A stretch of DNA of 64,000 nt. Origin: Phallusia mammillata (Eukaryota). The stretch spans positions 10,354,001 through 10,418,000 of the forward strand of contig OZ281498.1 in the NCBI GenBank assembly GCA_965637545.1, written 5' to 3'. Positions 46,701-52,700 of the stretch are shown in pieces. The notes beneath the pieces are model-generated. The model was not told where the DNA came from. It worked only from the letters and a program-made list of their open reading frames with translations, and did no database searches. Numbering within the stretch: position 1 is the first letter of the stretch; the number at the start of each line of letters is the position of its first letter. A program made the position numbers and the translations under genes.

Positions 46701-49700
46701 AATAGTGGTTCGTGCCAGCAGATATCAATAATAAAGAGAAACGAGAGTGTTTTGTGCGTGTAAGACTGGATTTTAGGACATTGGCATGATAAAAACTGTA
46801 AACAAGCAGTGTAACAGGTTAAACTGTTACTTCAATTTGACACGCAAATCGGTTGGCGTGCCATGCAAAACCACCTCGCGTGCCAACCTTGGCACCCGTG
46901 CCAGGGGTTGCCGACCCATGTGTTAAACAATGAGGATTTGTCTCTGTTCGCTTGTTTAACTGCAACAGAAAAATGTTGATTACACTAAAAAGACTCGGAA
47001 CAGTGGTTCTAAACGTTCGCAAAAATTACAAAACCCTGCTTTAACTTGGCCAAACCAATAAATTTCATCCTCAAACACCATTTTTCAAATTATCATGATT
47101 AGTGGACTACCGTCGAAGTCTTAACGTAGACTTGGGTAGCCGCAAGAATTCAAACGAGCCAGAGCTATAAGTTTGCAGGTCCGGTTTGAGCTAGTTAAAA
47201 ATCTGTATAGGTGCCAACTCTACCAAAATTGCTATTAAATTTCACGTTCTTTTTACAAATATAGAAGGTGTATTGATTTGTTGCGCATATGCGTATATTC
47301 TATAGATCTTCATACAGGTCTGCATATCAAAATGGCATATTCCGTAAATATAACTTTCGAAATTCGGCCAAATAAAATTCAGGGTTAAGCCGTATTGGGG
47401 TTTATACAGCCAATACTGCAACGGTGAAATGCTGTCTTTTCTATATTCCAGCAATAGTATTTGTAGCTAAATTTAATAGGTACGGTTGTAAAAAAATATA
47501 TTTGAAACCTGTATATTCCTTTGTGGACATCGCCAAACTGGCCTTCCCCAATCGTTGTGACAACTTCAATTTGATCACGTGGAATTTCGTAATCATTTTC
47601 TGCATCACAAAAAAAAAAACAGTTAGAGCTTCTGTAGTAACTCAATAAATGCGTCCATTACACCCAGTATGATAAATTTCGCAAAGAGTAAGTTACAAGC
47701 TACATTAGGAGTAAGGTTGCTATCGATAAATAAATTTTATTCCTCGGGATTTGTTTACATCTTGTGAAATGTCAGTTTAAGTCGATTGTGACAGAGGTCC
47801 TTAACATACGACAAAGTATTATATACCTTTTGCGTGGCACACGCATAGACACACAAATAAAAGCATATCAACGTTATGTATAATGTTATTTTCCTTTGTC
47901 CCATATTACAGAGTTTCCAAACAGATGGGTTAACCTTTTAACTTGATAAACTATAGACTTTATGGTAAAATATACGGCCATAAGCGGGAAAAGGACTGAA
48001 TAAGACAAATTGTTAAATGTAAAATATGTTCACGCGCGGATAGGAAACGTGGTGTAGGTTTTACAAAATTTGCAAAACCACATAGCGCTTACCTCTTGGT
48101 GAGTTCATGTCTTCGGTGATCTCGGCATAATCGTCGGTTTCTGCGAGAGGAAAAGATTTTCTGTTACGCGGGTCATGGGAAATCACCGGGGGCAAAGGTC
48201 GCGGGTCGCTCAAGCGTTTCACAGCCGACTTGCCCGCGTCTGTACTAGTGCTGGCTCGGTTCCTGCGACTCAATCTAAATTTTCTAACAACTGTGGTGTC
48301 GTTGGCTTCTGCACGCTGCGTGATAACTGACTTCTTATTAACCGGCATCAACGGTTTTGGCAAGTTTTTGAACAGGACAGGCTTAAACGGAGGCAGCGGC
48401 GGCGGAGAAACTTCTTTTGGTACAATAGAAGGTTGTGCTGGCGCAATTTTGCTGCTATCGGCGCTAACTGATCTTTCCAAGTTTGCAGGTGACGTTGGCG
48501 ATTTCGGGTCGGGCGTTGGTGATGTATCTCCGGAATCGAAATCGCCCAAAAGCTGATCAAGTTCGTTAAGTTTCTCAGCCTCGGACCTTGTGTCGACCTC
48601 TCGTTTGCGCTTGTAAACGGCGGAAACTTTGATCGGTAGGTGGCGTGAGGAGTTGATGGGTCGGCTGTTCGGGATATCATAATTAAACTTGTCACATTTC
48701 TCTTTATACCAACGTTCGACAAGCGGCACTGAACTAACGGCGTTACCAGGCACTACTGCGTAGTTTGAGCTGCCAGTAGACATCGTGCGCCCGTTAGCGG
48801 ACATTTGCATTTCGTGAAAAATTCGCTTGCCAAGTTTTTCAGGGCTGTTGTGCTGCTGGTCGTTACTGAAGACGCTGCAGTAGGAGGCAAAGCTCTCGCC
48901 CGTCATTGTGCGTTTTAAGGTGGGTGAAAGATGAGGCGGTAGATCGGAGGCTGAAGTGTTACGACGCGGAAGAGTTGTGGAGGCAAACCCGGCCGATTGT
49001 GATGGAGATCCCGAGCTAAGGCGTCTCGGGTTCGCAGAAATACTTAACTGATTGTTATTGATAGTTGCCCTGGACACTAAGCTTGTGGGCGTGTCCGTGC
49101 CACTTGGAGGAGGGGTCGAAGCTAGCATTGTGTTTGTAGATGATCGTAAACTGAGATCCAAATTGCTGTCATATGAAGACAAAGTGCTGGTCGACGGCAG
49201 AGCTGGTAAAGGAGACGTTGGTCTATTTTTACGGTCCAAGCCAGTTTTTACATCCAAATTAAGGCGCTTGTCCAACGGCTTTTTGGGCAAAGGTCCTGTT
49301 TTAGGCTTCCAAAAGGCGTAGTTCCCAAGTTTCTTTCTCAGTTTTGATGGCCGCTGGTCGGCTGCATCCGACAAAGCCTTTTTTTCTTCCTCCAGTGCGT
49401 AGTACTGATAAGGCCCACTCATTCTTGTAGGGGAACAACAAAGCAAGCTAGGAGAAGTGGATTCTTCGATGGAAGAAGAGTTACTGTGAATCAGTGGAGG
49501 TCGAACTGGGTGACTTTTCCCTTCTTCTTCTTCCGAATCAGGAACGTTGTTTTTATTCTTCTTACTCACGACTTCATTTATGGTGAGCTCAACGTATATG
49601 TTCTCGTCAGGTGAAGCAAGGGTCGGTGGAGTTTCAGGCAAGGCGGTGTTGGAGATTGAAAACGTCGGTTTGGATGACTTTTTAGTTGAAAACAAACGCC

Positions 49701-52700
49701 TGTCAAGACTCTTTGAGCCGTCAAACTTGGGTGACTCATGCCTACCGGAAATAGAACGGAAGCCAGTAGGGCTGGGCCTCAGCGTGCTCGCACTGCTACT
49801 GGTACTTAAAGTGGGATATTTAGGTCGCTTTCGCAGCAGACTACCCGGGTAGTTACTGTAGTTGGAAAGGTTCACGCCCATGCTTGTGTAGATAGAAGCT
49901 TCGTCGTCCGCGTCCTGGGCATCGTCAAATCTTGAAAACAGATTCGGGTCGCTTGCGTTCCTGTGTGACAACGCTAGCGATGAGGACGACGAATCAGAAG
50001 CCAGAGCCGCTCTGATTGGCTGATTTGAATTGTCCTCCGCGCCTGATTGACTCGCAGAAGATGAGAGCGATGACCGACTGCTGTTATTGCCTTCGTAGTT
50101 CATGTAGACATTGGCTTCATTATCAAGGTCATCGGTCGACTTCCAAGGTCGTGGTAATCCAATGCAATCAGCCAATAGCTGCTGTTTTACGCTCGACCTA
50201 CGCCTTGGTAACGTACAAAAGTTCCCTGCAGAGCTCAGGTCCATATACATATCCTCATCGTCATCGTCATGCGATGTACTTGCACCTTTTGCAAACGTTT
50301 CATTTTCTACTGGGTCGCTCGAATCTACCTGGTCTTCTTCTGCCAAATCGTCCAATGACTTGCAGGATCTCCGACGAAAAAACTTTGCGCCGAACGAAGG
50401 TTTCTTTTTAACCCTGGCATAAGCGGGCATTGGCTGTTTAGGAGAAGTTGCCATATTCGCTAAGCCAAGTCGCTATAATAATGCAAAAAAGTTCATCTAC
50501 GCAAAACACTGTTTAAGTTAGTAACTAAAAATCTCAACACAAACTTTTACTGAACGAAAAATTTAAAAGTCAACGAGAGCAGTCACTGTACAGGTCCTGT
50601 AGTGCACTGACGTCACGAACACTTTCAAGACAAGTTCCAATTTGGATGTGGGGAACGATTTTGAATAGAAGGAAACGACCTGAAGAAGTTGAAACGAGAC
50701 ATGGCCTGTGGTTTGCCGAGCGAATAACCTCATAACATCCGGCCACGATCTAACACAGTTTATTTGCCTTATTTCCTATGCTTGGTTAATGCGCCGAAGA
50801 CAAGATTACCGCGCTGTGACAATTAACCTGAATGTTGTCATATAAATAACAACATTATATACATTCACTCTTACAATAGGGTTTTGTGTATGTTTGCAAA
50901 TTGATCAAGGAAAAGCGTGTTTTTTGAATAACTGTTACAAGTCTTCGAAATACAAAAGTTTTACTGCAAAAACTGTTTCCAACGATGTGAATAATATGCC
51001 CTACATACAGAAAAACACCAAGTTATGTAATCAACGCTTGGTATGTGACAGATTTCAGTTTTACCGTGAACACAAAAATCAGTTTTTATGATAACTGGCA
51101 GTACGTCCATTTCTCGCCTTCCAACACTAAAGTTTGGAACAAAACCAATAACCATAGTCGAGAAAATATCCAATACGCAAATAGGTTTTCTGGAATAAGG
51201 GATAGTGCGTCAATACCACAAGGAGAGCTTTAGTTTGTGAAGATTGAGGGAAGAAGTTTGTCATAATAGTCATTTTATCATAGATTTAGCAACCACACTC
51301 AAAATGAAGACAACAATATACCAAAAACGCTTCTTAGGGCATTGCTAAAATTCCTCACATACAAAGCATGTGCATTCTAAACAAATTCGCCATCTACGCT
51401 GAGAACATTATAACGAATGGAACAAATAGGCCATTAACCGATATCGTTAAAGCTAACGAGGTGATACCAGCAACACCATGTGAAAGTCGTGAAATTTAGA
51501 ACACGTGGGCTTCGGTTTTCACAACTCGATACCGTAAAACAAGCTCCTGTTATTTTTATGTCGTGTCGGGCTCGTTAAGTGAACTCGAGACACGTAGAAG
51601 GGCGGACAGCTTGTGGGCGGATGCTGTAACGCGAGCGCAGGTTTAACTGCCGAAGACCGTCGCCTCTATGCCCGCCGGCAATCATTCGATCGCGATCGTC
51701 CATGCGAGGATACTAAGCAAATCATACAGACAGACGACATCAAGACTAAAACTAGGCTTGTATATAACCAAGTGTACAGGTTGAACATGGCATGTGGTTG
51801 TAACCTTAAAATTGCGAATACGGCTTTAGATCCACAGTAAAGAAAGATGCGTTTGGTGTTTATAAGGAGCTGATAGAATGGCAATTCACACGTATAGGTG
51901 GCGAAATTACGGACGACCTCAAGACTATAAAGCTAGGCTGGTATAGAACCAGGTGTTCAGGTTCAACATGGCGCGGGGTTGTGTCATTAAAACTGCGAAT
52001 ACGACTTTAGACCCACAGTAAAGAAAGATGCGTTTGGTGTTTATAAGGAGCTGATAGAGTGGCGAGTCACGCATATAGGTAGCGAAATTATGGAAACGGA
52101 ACAACACCAAGACTAAAGCTAGGCTGTTACAGAGTTGCAAGTCGGGCCGGGCTTTTCGGGCCGGGTTCGGGTTCGGGCCGGGTTCGGGCCGGGTTCGGGC
52201 TTAGGTATTTGTGAGAAAACGGGCTTAAAACGGGCCTGACTTTACGTTCCGTGCCCACCATTGTTTTTTAAATAAAATCACTCAGCTAAGCAACAATTCT
52301 CTGGCTTTGACCTAATGTCCACCCTCCTCTGAAACTATGTATTGTTTGCCCCATTGTCTACTATTGTTCATTGTGTTTGTTGTCTTTCTCTTCTTTCTCA
52401 TCCTTTGTTGCAATGGTTTCGTGGATAGGCCTGTCAATCAAAATTTCGGGCCTAAACGGGCTTTGCAAAAACGTTTCGGGTTCGGGCCGGGCTTCGGGTT
52501 TATACTTTCGGGTTCGGGCCGGGTTCGGGCTCAGATTTCGGGCCCGCTTGCAACTCTGGGCTGTTACAGAACCCGAGTATTTAACTTACATGGCATGTGG
52601 ATATAATCATTAAAAATGCGAATACAACATTAGATCCATAGAAAGACACGTTTGGTACTTAAACAAGCTGACAGTATGACAATACCCACATGCAGGTAGC

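Follow-up and report, generated by a model that had tools for sequence, protein, structure and literature searches.

In the FAK gene of Phallusia mammillata, which lies on the minus strand of the 64-kb stretch of DNA analysed here (the window), the intron just before the Y397 exon harbours what cross-species sequence comparison confirms as a genuine FAK coding exon, exon A, conserved over a long time and forming a 2.36-kb 5' extension of the Y397 exon. Its open frame recurs at the same position of the gene in other species, evolves by coding-type substitution, runs through a splice acceptor that is thereby used twice, and encodes an arm predicted to be disordered. We consider it somewhat probable that this conserved exon gives a FERM-less kinase carrying a disordered, tyrosine-motif-rich arm, in a transcript whose structure we infer.

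The exon A frame, its conservation and the dual-use acceptor

The following features, all on the minus strand, define exon A and its neighbours:

59692 to 59821, minus strand: canonical upstream FERM-kinase linker exon (ending in GLMS), which ends in phase 1
48064 to 50472, minus strand: exon A open frame, continuous with the Y397 exon (ORF listing, stop-to-stop count)
48141 to 48156, minus strand: acceptor of the Y397 exon, polypyrimidine tract plus AG, tcttttcctctcgcag, translated K-S-F-P-L-A in the exon A frame
48093 to 48140, minus strand: canonical 48-nt autophosphorylation-site exon, E plus 15 residues, phase 1 at both ends, with its GT donor at 48092-48091
47509 to 47599, minus strand: first kinase-domain exon, E plus 29 residues, in frame after the Y397 exon (exon mapping)

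From stop to stop the frame extends from 50472 down to 48064 (803 codons), and the ORF listing, counting from the ATG, gives 797 amino acids (48061..50454). It crosses the polypyrimidine/AG acceptor and enters the ETDDYAEI (Y397-type) exon at 48140, so that tcttttcctctcgcag (48156-48141) is followed by 16 exon residues and then by the gtaagc donor. The boundaries originally proposed, 48093 as the last exon base and 50472 as the first open base, are both correct. In the upstream intron the fraction of stop trinucleotides is 0.050, which puts the probability of 803 open codons arising by chance at about 1.6e-18; read in its two other frames, the exon A stretch contains 28 and 64 stops, and GC content is 0.49 in exon A versus 0.37-0.40 in its flanks.

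A search of 1.84 billion representative proteins retrieved four homologues of exon A (E-values from 8.5e-82 to 7e-4), four clusters of unnamed metagenome/Logan ORFs that all share one 10-residue C-terminal segment. These entries are unspliced, prokaryote-style ORF calls on genomic DNA; in the searched collections, neither a spliced protein joining the arm to the kinase domain nor any named protein containing the exon A region was found, and gene predictors therefore appear to treat the region as intron. In the relatives' contigs the ORF runs through a strong pyrimidine tract and AG into the Y397 exon, after which come a GT donor and the kinase exons, and in the nearest relative (L003), as in the window, about 9 kb separate the giant ORF from the upstream linker exon. 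At least three further marine invertebrate species with DNA keep exon A intact in the orthologous place, a fourth being represented by protein only. The frameshifts or stops in orthologous intervals that the initial annotation had named as evidence against a coding role were looked for, and the intervals proved to be intact ORFs of 742-926 codons, to which a short contig adds a piece of 514 codons.

Substitution between species follows the pattern of purifying selection, with position 3 of the codon the least conserved in all compared pairs: identities at the three positions are 0.52/0.64/0.31 between the window and L003, 0.40/0.47/0.30 between the window and a more distant relative, L001, and 0.50/0.57/0.35 between L001 and L004, third positions being saturated. 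Weak tests come from polymorphism within species (p = 0.10 and 0.056): one relative, sampled by five haplotypes, carries no indels in the ORF versus four in the 3.9 kb upstream, and six non-synonymous against five synonymous changes (pN/pS 0.38, p = 0.10), while in two haplotypes of a second relative none of ten variants falls inside its ORFs. The initial reading of the frame as real coding sequence is thus borne out by its intactness in relatives and its coding-type substitution. That it could instead be a chance ORF, a decaying relic or the gene of an inserted mobile element is a reading to which we give almost no credence. It would accord with the low-complexity composition of exon A, with the failure of Pfam, PDB and Atlas searches to assign it to a known family, and with an SNP density that is not reduced in one relative (4.0 per kb in the ORF versus 0.77 per kb in the flanking intron of the L003 species); against it stand the chance probability of about 1e-18, the lack of transposon domains, and the preservation of the ORF in its orthologous place in three further species at the DNA level and a fourth at the protein level, despite saturated third positions. 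The cross-species conservation of the ORF already contradicts it.

The acceptor of the Y397 exon had been described as both splice signal and codons (KSFPLA), and this double use holds in all five species examined. The corresponding tract reads RSLPLT, SSFPTCL and SSFPASL in the relatives with DNA and SSFPVSV in P0003 at the protein level, the isoform-specific sequence being contiguous and in frame with the Y397 exon in the window, L001, L003 and L004 (DNA) and in P0003 (protein). The donor of the Y397 exon is likewise kept in every species, and the canonical isoform needs the same donor. Were the donor at 48092 left unused and the transcript ended in the downstream intron, the product would be a stand-alone, kinase-less disordered protein of about 797 residues with a decoy Y397. 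The unspliced frame does close 10 codons past the donor, and every database entry is an unspliced ORF call, albeit a prokaryote-style one on genomic DNA; the donor, however, is the constitutive one of the Y397 exon, and the read-through tails are unconserved, with L001 having none. We regard this outcome as distinctly improbable.

The 5' end of exon A

Four features bear on how RNA might enter the exon:

50452 to 50454, minus strand: candidate start codon in the context aatATGg (A at -3, G at +4), with a conserved Tyr 11 codons further on
50460 to 50461, minus strand: phase-1 AG of the initial annotation, with a purine-interrupted tract, not conserved, 13 nt downstream of a better AG
50473 to 50475, minus strand: in-frame TAG, 6 codons upstream of the ATG, whose AG trails the T-rich tract ttttttgcattattatag
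50608 to 50615, no strand assigned: CRE palindrome, TGACGTCA, 154-161 nt upstream of the ATG

Two models had been put forward for this end, an alternative first exon and an upstream acceptor yielding a giant linker insert; of these the alternative start is favoured and the insert is less so, its phase-1 AG being weak and unconserved. In the insert model the linker exon (59692, phase 1) would be joined to exon A, giving FERM, about 790 additional residues, Y397 and kinase. Such a join could use the AG at 50461-50460, the frame being open from 50472, and vertebrate FAK does have small alternative exons on either side of Y397 (PMC1570463). The tract before this AG is nevertheless interrupted by purines, and the better site (AG at 50474-50473), more acceptor-like than any other ahead of the ORF, is in phase 0 and thus out of phase with the linker exon, so that joining the two would cause a frameshift and a stop after 11 codons. 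The phase-1 acceptor upstream of the ATG has no counterpart in the two other checkable species: L001 has an in-frame stop 2 codons before the ATG, the only AG between the two being in phase 2, and in L003 the AGs ahead of the ATG are also in phase 2, with a 1-nt indel polymorphism (L003/L005) about 50 nt before the ATG. Conservation, moreover, begins only about 9 residues past the ATG, and the window and L003 have the same spacing between ATG and conserved Tyr. That the start codon is unreachable in frame from the canonical exon holds on balance and not absolutely, as the window keeps the weak phase-1 AG. The 5' end, as judged from the DNA, therefore favours an isoform-specific start over a FERM-linked insert, and we hold the latter to be improbable.

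The CRE cited in support of a promoter is indeed present at 50608-50615. It is, however, one of eight copies in the 64-kb window, and no promoter element, the CRE included, is conserved in position among the relatives; it is therefore no promoter mark by itself.

The description of exon A as a first exon stands insofar as an isoform-specific start is favoured, and it may be too simple, since the L001 contig hints at a further exon upstream. Exon A might be internal, with one or more dedicated coding exons before it and the ATG at 50454 an internal codon. In L001 a 314-codon ORF lies 5 kb upstream; it has an ATG of its own (aaaATGg), preceded at 9 codons by a stop, and contains EMYARVNKR, which appears to correspond to the N-terminal YARVxKK motif. 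After this sequence comes a phase-1 donor, GTATGG, compatible with a phase-1 AG at +47 of the main ORF, and this join would restore the spacing from Tyr to CKS (22 residues, versus 19 in the window and 18 in L003). The L004 homology stops at an acceptor-like ttttgtag|AAT, and the window has the good phase-0 acceptor at 50474-50473. On the other hand, the L001 link depends on a motif of 7 residues, tblastn at E<=1 turned up no homologue of the upstream ORF in the window or L003, and these two share an ATG at equal distance from the conserved Tyr. A dedicated multi-exon N-terminus is, in our estimate, unlikely, with a chance worth keeping in mind. From the L001 upstream motif ORF and the L004 homology end it follows that the arm may be multi-exonic and that in some lineages translation may truly begin elsewhere than at 50454. 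This arrangement is a variant of the isoform that we prefer rather than a contradiction of it, as the product would still be FERM-less.

Conserved islands in a predicted disordered arm

The sequence of the arm alternates about a dozen short conserved islands with variable stretches, the main ones being:

50182 to 50376, minus strand: N-terminal conserved islands, namely 11 residues (50376-50344), EDMYMDL (50256-50236) and 12 residues (50217-50182)
50095 to 50154, minus strand: conserved 11-residue island plus YMNY (YxN), from alignment with homologues
49867 to 49896, minus strand: conserved 10-residue YxxM island, in all four full-length homologues
49300 to 49503, minus strand: most conserved core in the alignment, a 20-residue di-Cys segment plus a 16-residue basic-aromatic segment
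48658 to 48720, minus strand: conserved 21-residue island, with an AlphaFold2 helix at residues 581-589 (pLDDT about 85)
48535 to 48582, minus strand: LD-like helix of 16 residues (AlphaFold2 helix 625-640, pLDDT about 80), common only to the nearest relative

Residues are kept unevenly: Trp at 3/3 positions, Cys at 6/7 and Tyr at 13/20, versus 39% overall. All the motifs first listed for the exon (YMDL, YMNY, YSNY, YTSM, YVEL and YDIP, with several PxxP stretches) are present; YxDL, YxN, YTxM, Y.IP and the YAEI site are kept across groups, YSNY is not conserved in relatives, and the conserved short motifs of the arm also include PxxP runs, a PKA-type RRxSS site and YxxL-type Tyr motifs. AlphaFold2 assigns pLDDT below 50, that is, predicted disorder, to 693 of 787 residues. 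Searches for known families returned no Pfam match for exon A and no transposon domains, a PDB profile search matched FAK's own Y397 segment alone (E = 0.038), and the Atlas search gave generic disordered look-alikes only, below 0.9.

The proposed isoform and its known counterparts

The mechanism that we propose is that RNA entering ahead of 50454, by transcription or by upstream splicing, would read the acceptor at 48141 through as codons, and that the usual donor at 48092 would then join exon A to the kinase exons. Translation would not continue from FERM but would start at 50454 or in an upstream exon of its own, and the predicted product would have the kinase, linker and FAT regions of FAK, with about 770 disordered residues in place of FERM. 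In the ordinary isoform the same DNA is intron and supplies the acceptor with its last 16 bases. By analogy with FERM autoinhibition in vertebrates, loss of FERM may remove autoinhibition, and the FERM-less product could be constitutively active. The arm is a putative phosphotyrosine docking scaffold, and its CC plus polybasic core may stand in for the membrane contact of FERM.

FAK regulation is understood almost entirely through FERM autoinhibition and its release at membranes and integrin sites. If it exists, the proposed isoform would be a natural experiment in FERM-independent FAK signalling, with Y397, kinase and FAT kept and a scaffold exchanged for FERM, and a single piece of DNA would be at once intron, splice acceptor and 770 codons. 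Other giant exons embedded in introns may systematically escape notice in invertebrate genomes. We judge it rather unlikely that the proposal extends to the FAK genes of an entire invertebrate lineage, ascidians (sister group of vertebrates) probably among them, which would encode a second, as yet unannotated class of kinase in which the autoinhibitory, membrane-binding FERM would be swapped for a disordered multi-phosphotyrosine scaffold of about 770-900 residues with a candidate di-Cys/polybasic membrane anchor, its exon doubling as intron and acceptor, and of which primate intron-14 transcripts would be a vestige. The question is also raised whether human brain transcripts that begin immediately upstream of the Y397 exon, dismissed as side products, have an older origin.

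Docking and scaffold proteins (the p130Cas substrate domain, Gab, IRS, Dok) are long and disordered with many conserved YxxM, YxN and YxxL/P motifs and PxxP runs, through which SH2 or SH3 partners would be recruited upon phosphorylation. Exon A resembles them in its multiple conserved, predicted phosphotyrosine-type motifs within a predicted disordered region; unlike them it has no PH, PTB or SH3 domain and no sequence homology to them, and its scaffold would be covalently fused to a kinase. The LD motifs of paxillin (LDxLLxxL) are ligands of the FAK FAT domain, and residues 625-640 of exon A recall them in a confidently predicted helix with an LDxLLxxF pattern. Unlike the paxillin LD, however, this motif is kept by no relative but the nearest (QLEVLLTDFE); the other group lacks it.

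Within FAK itself, the vertebrate alternative exons near Y397 (boxes 28, 6 and 7) alter autophosphorylation behaviour and were not found outside vertebrates (PMC1570463). Like exon A they change the sequence flanking the autophosphorylation site, but they are cassettes of 6-28 residues with ordinary splice sites that keep FERM, whereas exon A exceeds them in size about 100-fold and is contiguous with the Y397 exon. FRNK (FAK-related non-kinase) is an autonomous isoform from an intronic promoter with a short specific 5' part read into a shared exon (PMC1570463; PMC9354703). It too is generated within an intron of the same gene, yet its start lies beyond the kinase domain, so that it lacks the kinase and acts as a dominant negative, whereas exon A precedes the kinase and would give a FERM-less kinase. 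The closest precedent is the human PTK2 transcript BC028733/AAH28733 (Corsi et al. 2006, PMC1570463), in which exon 15 is extended at its 5' end and for which intron 14 contains a putative promoter; it starts in intron 14 right beside the Y397 exon, its predicted product is a FAK without FERM, and its extension of 135 nt (about 20 residues, non-canonical ATG context), reported in primates only, was judged a possible side product (PMC1570463). As proposed for exon A, its RNA comes from the adjoining intron, the acceptor is unused, the ATG is in frame and the predicted product keeps Y397, kinase and FAT. Exon A differs in its length of 2.36 kb (about 770 residues) and in its conservation between species that are deeply diverged, the two being likened by arrangement and not by homology.

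The exon ahead of the autophosphorylation site

The minus strand of the window holds most of a focal adhesion kinase (FAK/PTK2-type) gene, in which exon A lies between the linker exon, which precedes the kinase part, and the 48-nt Y397-type exon with the autophosphorylation site (ETDDYAEI), the latter fitting in phase both the end of the linker exon (phase 1) and the start of the first kinase exon.

Features of the FAK gene in the window
near 61.2 kb, minus strand: end of the FERM domain
59821-59692, minus strand: proline-rich linker exon, ending in phase 1
50472-48064, minus strand: exon A ORF, stop to stop, 803 codons; ATG at 50454, 797 codons
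48140-48093, minus strand: Y397-type exon, 48 nt, phase 1 at both ends
from 47599 downwards, minus strand: kinase exons
near 7.8-6.3 kb, minus strand: FAT-domain exons

The initial annotation had reported an ORF of 797 codons ahead of the Y397 exon, which is present and matches in every detail. As proposed there, the acceptor of the Y397 exon doubles as codons, tcttttcctctcgcag being read as KSFPLA in a frame that continues through this exon to the gtaagc donor at 48092, and all the motifs that had been named were found in exon A. At the neighbouring intron's frequency of stop trinucleotides (5.0%), 803 codons would stay open by chance with a probability of ~1.6e-18; in the same stretch the two remaining frames contain 28 and 64 stops, and GC content there is 0.49 as against 0.37-0.40 around it.

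Other features in the window
20246-22072, minus strand: second giant ORF ('exon B'), 608 codons, GC 0.47, in the kinase-to-FAT part of the FAK gene
3443-5392, plus strand: two adjacent ORFs with halves of a reverse-transcriptase domain (RVT_1)
23487-23562, minus strand: tRNA-Phe (GAA) gene or tRNA-derived element within a FAK intron
59153-58965 and 60939-60684, minus strand: intron repeats, also at 52600-51900 and 539-381; dispersed, with translated shadows

The exon B ORF matched no Pfam family; long insertions in the kinase-to-FAT linker have been described in echinoderm, cnidarian and arthropod FAKs (Corsi et al., PMC1570463). The RVT_1 pair, which has the appearance of a broken retroelement, lies just past the 3' end of the FAK gene, and Rfam returned nothing besides a tRNA.

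Homologues of exon A and their conservation

When 1.84 billion representative proteins were searched exhaustively with HMMER, four homologues of exon A and none further came up, all being unnamed ORF calls from metagenome or Logan contigs and all having as their C-terminal end the same segment, which closes in (E)D.

Homologues of exon A
P0001: 970 aa, E = 8.5e-82
P0002: 897 aa, E = 4.5e-20
P0003: 742 aa, E = 1.4e-13
P0004: 502 aa, E = 6.9e-4

On the contigs of the three relatives with DNA the ORF runs through a strong Y-tract/AG into the Y397 exon and its GT donor, the acceptor tract being read as RSLPLT, SSFPTCL or SSFPASL, and the downstream kinase exons share 74-97% amino-acid identity with those of the window. 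The contig of the nearest relative (L003) has its linker exon ~9 kb ahead of the giant ORF, just as the window does. Three further protein homology searches (single sequence, alignment, C-terminal region) returned P0001 and P0003 only, with no named proteins or longer spliced isoforms among the results, and no protein joining the arm, i.e. the product of exon A, to the kinase domain was found in the protein collections searched. Scanning JGI metagenomes with the alignment yielded one locus, from the L003 species, which recurs in ENA, JGI and Logan samples. Stool metagenomes of the ascidian Halocynthia roretzi (SRR10746996/7; PMC7807810) are the source of contigs L001 and L002, most simply taken as host DNA, and L004 comes from a marine biofilm metagenome (SAMN08714533; PMC6355793). 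Since the window, L001 and L003 resemble one another far more closely in the kinase exons than in the arm, the three species probably belong to one animal clade. Contig L001 also carries an immunoglobulin I-set domain exon on the opposite strand (949-1185, minus), ~9 kb upstream of the giant ORF; no FERM exon was found on it within 10 kb upstream of this ORF, and its downstream introns measure just 90-900 nt.

Identity by codon position (first/second/third)
window vs L003: 0.52/0.64/0.31
window vs L001: 0.40/0.47/0.30
L001 vs L004: 0.50/0.57/0.35

Between species, codon positions 1 and 2 are kept and position 3 is saturated. Conservation in the alignment is patchy, with about a dozen islands, including ED.Y.DL, CTLPRR.SSVK, PWKS.D.LD, Y.N, IYT.M, RPPL..SNSS.EE....CCSPTR, SKL.KKLG.Y.FWKPK, R..S.S.LP and WY..KC..F.Y.IP, set in otherwise free sequence, and the best-kept residues of the arm are Trp (3/3), Cys (6/7) and Tyr (13/20), against 39% overall. 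Stops and frameshifts in the orthologous interval of related species had been put forward as a test of the ORF, which it passed, the relatives' intervals being open. Evidence for selection on the ORF is less strong at the within-species level. In the L003 species, five haplotypes (L003, L005, L006, L007 and L008) show 6 changes that are non-synonymous and 5 that are synonymous (pN/pS 0.38, p = 0.10), with no indel in the ORF and 4 in the 3.9 kb upstream. The same haplotypes carry 11 SNPs in the 2.7 kb ORF vs 3 in the 3.9 kb of upstream intron, a density some five times higher in the ORF (4.0 vs 0.77 per kb), for which greater GC/CpG mutability is one guess; between two L001 haplotypes none of 10 variants falls inside ORFs. 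We conclude with high confidence that exon A is genuinely coding, that it is conserved and that the acceptor within it is dual-use. Given the conservation and position, we rejected a chance ORF, a transposon gene and an independent gene nested on the same strand.

The start of the transcript

The structure of the transcript was inferred from sequence, and on this basis exon A is quite likely spliced on to the kinase. Several observations favour an isoform-specific start at its ATG. An in-frame TAG stands 6 codons before the ATG in the window and a TAA 2 codons before it in L001, and the L003 species shows a 1-nt indel polymorphism ~50 nt before the ATG, so that the open frame further upstream cannot be coding there. 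The ATG context is aatATGg, exactly 11 codons separate the ATG from the first conserved Tyr in both the window and L003, and detectable conservation begins ~9 residues past the ATG. The initial annotation had also considered an insert that would keep the FERM domain, the linker exon being joined to exon A by an upstream phase-1 acceptor. The AG in question does exist (50461-50460), but its tract is poor and a better AG (50474-50473) precedes it by 13 nt. Joined to the linker exon, this better AG, which is phase 0, would lead to a stop after 11 codons, and in L001 and L003 the AGs before the ATG are all phase-2; we consider such an insert improbable.

The isoform-specific start may nevertheless involve more than one exon. 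In L001, 5 kb ahead of the giant ORF, there is a 314-codon Ser/Asn/Pro-rich ORF (3998-4942, plus strand) that has an aaaATGg start of its own and contains DPYATI, DPYSTV, LYSKVNKK and EMYARVNKR, the last resembling PAYARVKKK of the window and PMYACVQKK of L003. Directly after EMYARVNKR comes a phase-1 GTATGG donor that fits the phase-1 AG at +47 of the main L001 ORF, and this upstream ORF may represent the arm's first coding exon in that species. Because of this ORF and donor, and because the homology of L004 ends at ttttgtag|AAT, the arm may be distributed across at least two exons in the L001/L004 group; a dedicated exon may likewise precede exon A in the window. With or without it, the predicted product lacks FERM, and we find a FERM-less N-terminus rather likely. 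The whole statement, that a conserved dual-use coding exon is spliced to the kinase and provides a FERM-less N-terminus, we rate as a little better than an even call.

The CRE palindrome TGACGTCA, which had been offered as a promoter mark for this start, was indeed found at 50608-50615. Its position is not kept in relatives, and it is one of 8 such sites in the window (1.05 expected), therefore no specific promoter mark. The sites (2536, 17969, 19585, 19626, 50608, 57793, 58114 and 60222) all lie in unique contexts, with C as the next base at 6/8; those at 19585 and 19626 form a pair 41 bp apart, and the one at 58114, which lies 7.7 kb ahead of the ATG of exon A, adjoins GCGCATGCGC (NRF1-like) and attataat. 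A blastn comparison (word size 7) of the window with L001 and L003, and of these with each other, revealed no upstream non-coding conservation. The CpG observed/expected ratio stays at ~1.0 over all 64 kb, whether in gene body, introns or repeats, and is thus uninformative as a promoter mark; it suggests little germline CpG methylation at the FAK locus or in the genome.

The predicted arm and known FAK isoforms

The ORF matched no Pfam family, a PDB profile search with a 5-sequence alignment matched solely FAK's own linker/Y397 segment (E = 0.038), and the ESM Atlas gave just generic disordered clusters below 0.9, with low recognition. AlphaFold2 on the alignment returned a mean pLDDT of 40 (693/787 residues < 50), with two confident short helices, one at 581-589 within the WYKEKCDK island and an LD-like one at 625-640, common to the window and its nearest relative only. 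The arm contains 16% Ser and 10% Pro; it is, as modelled, intrinsically disordered and bears conserved short linear motifs. We assign its conserved Tyr motifs, from general motif knowledge, to the YxN, YxxM and YxxL/P classes, and on the same assumption take RRRSSV as a candidate basophilic-kinase site and the conserved CC, together with a basic-aromatic stretch 25 residues after it, as a candidate acylation-plus-polybasic membrane anchor. Exon A would work like a docking scaffold fused to a kinase, yet it falls in no docking-protein family.

No description of a giant exon before Y397 was found in the literature searched, and the vertebrate alternative exons around Y397 have not been found in non-vertebrates (PMC1570463). 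FRNK is an established intron-initiated FAK isoform (PMC1570463; PMC9354703). In the human brain transcript BC028733, exon 15 (the Y397 exon) is directly preceded by 135 nt of intron 14 that include an in-frame ATG, and upstream exons are absent; the encoded FAK would lack FERM and have a 20-residue extension. Corsi et al. (2006) discussed a promoter in intron 14 and thought that variants of this sort might be side products (PMC1570463). The transcript's architecture is that of exon A in miniature, and by this analogy exon A would belong with the intron-initiated FAK isoforms, a known kind of which the giant form is new.
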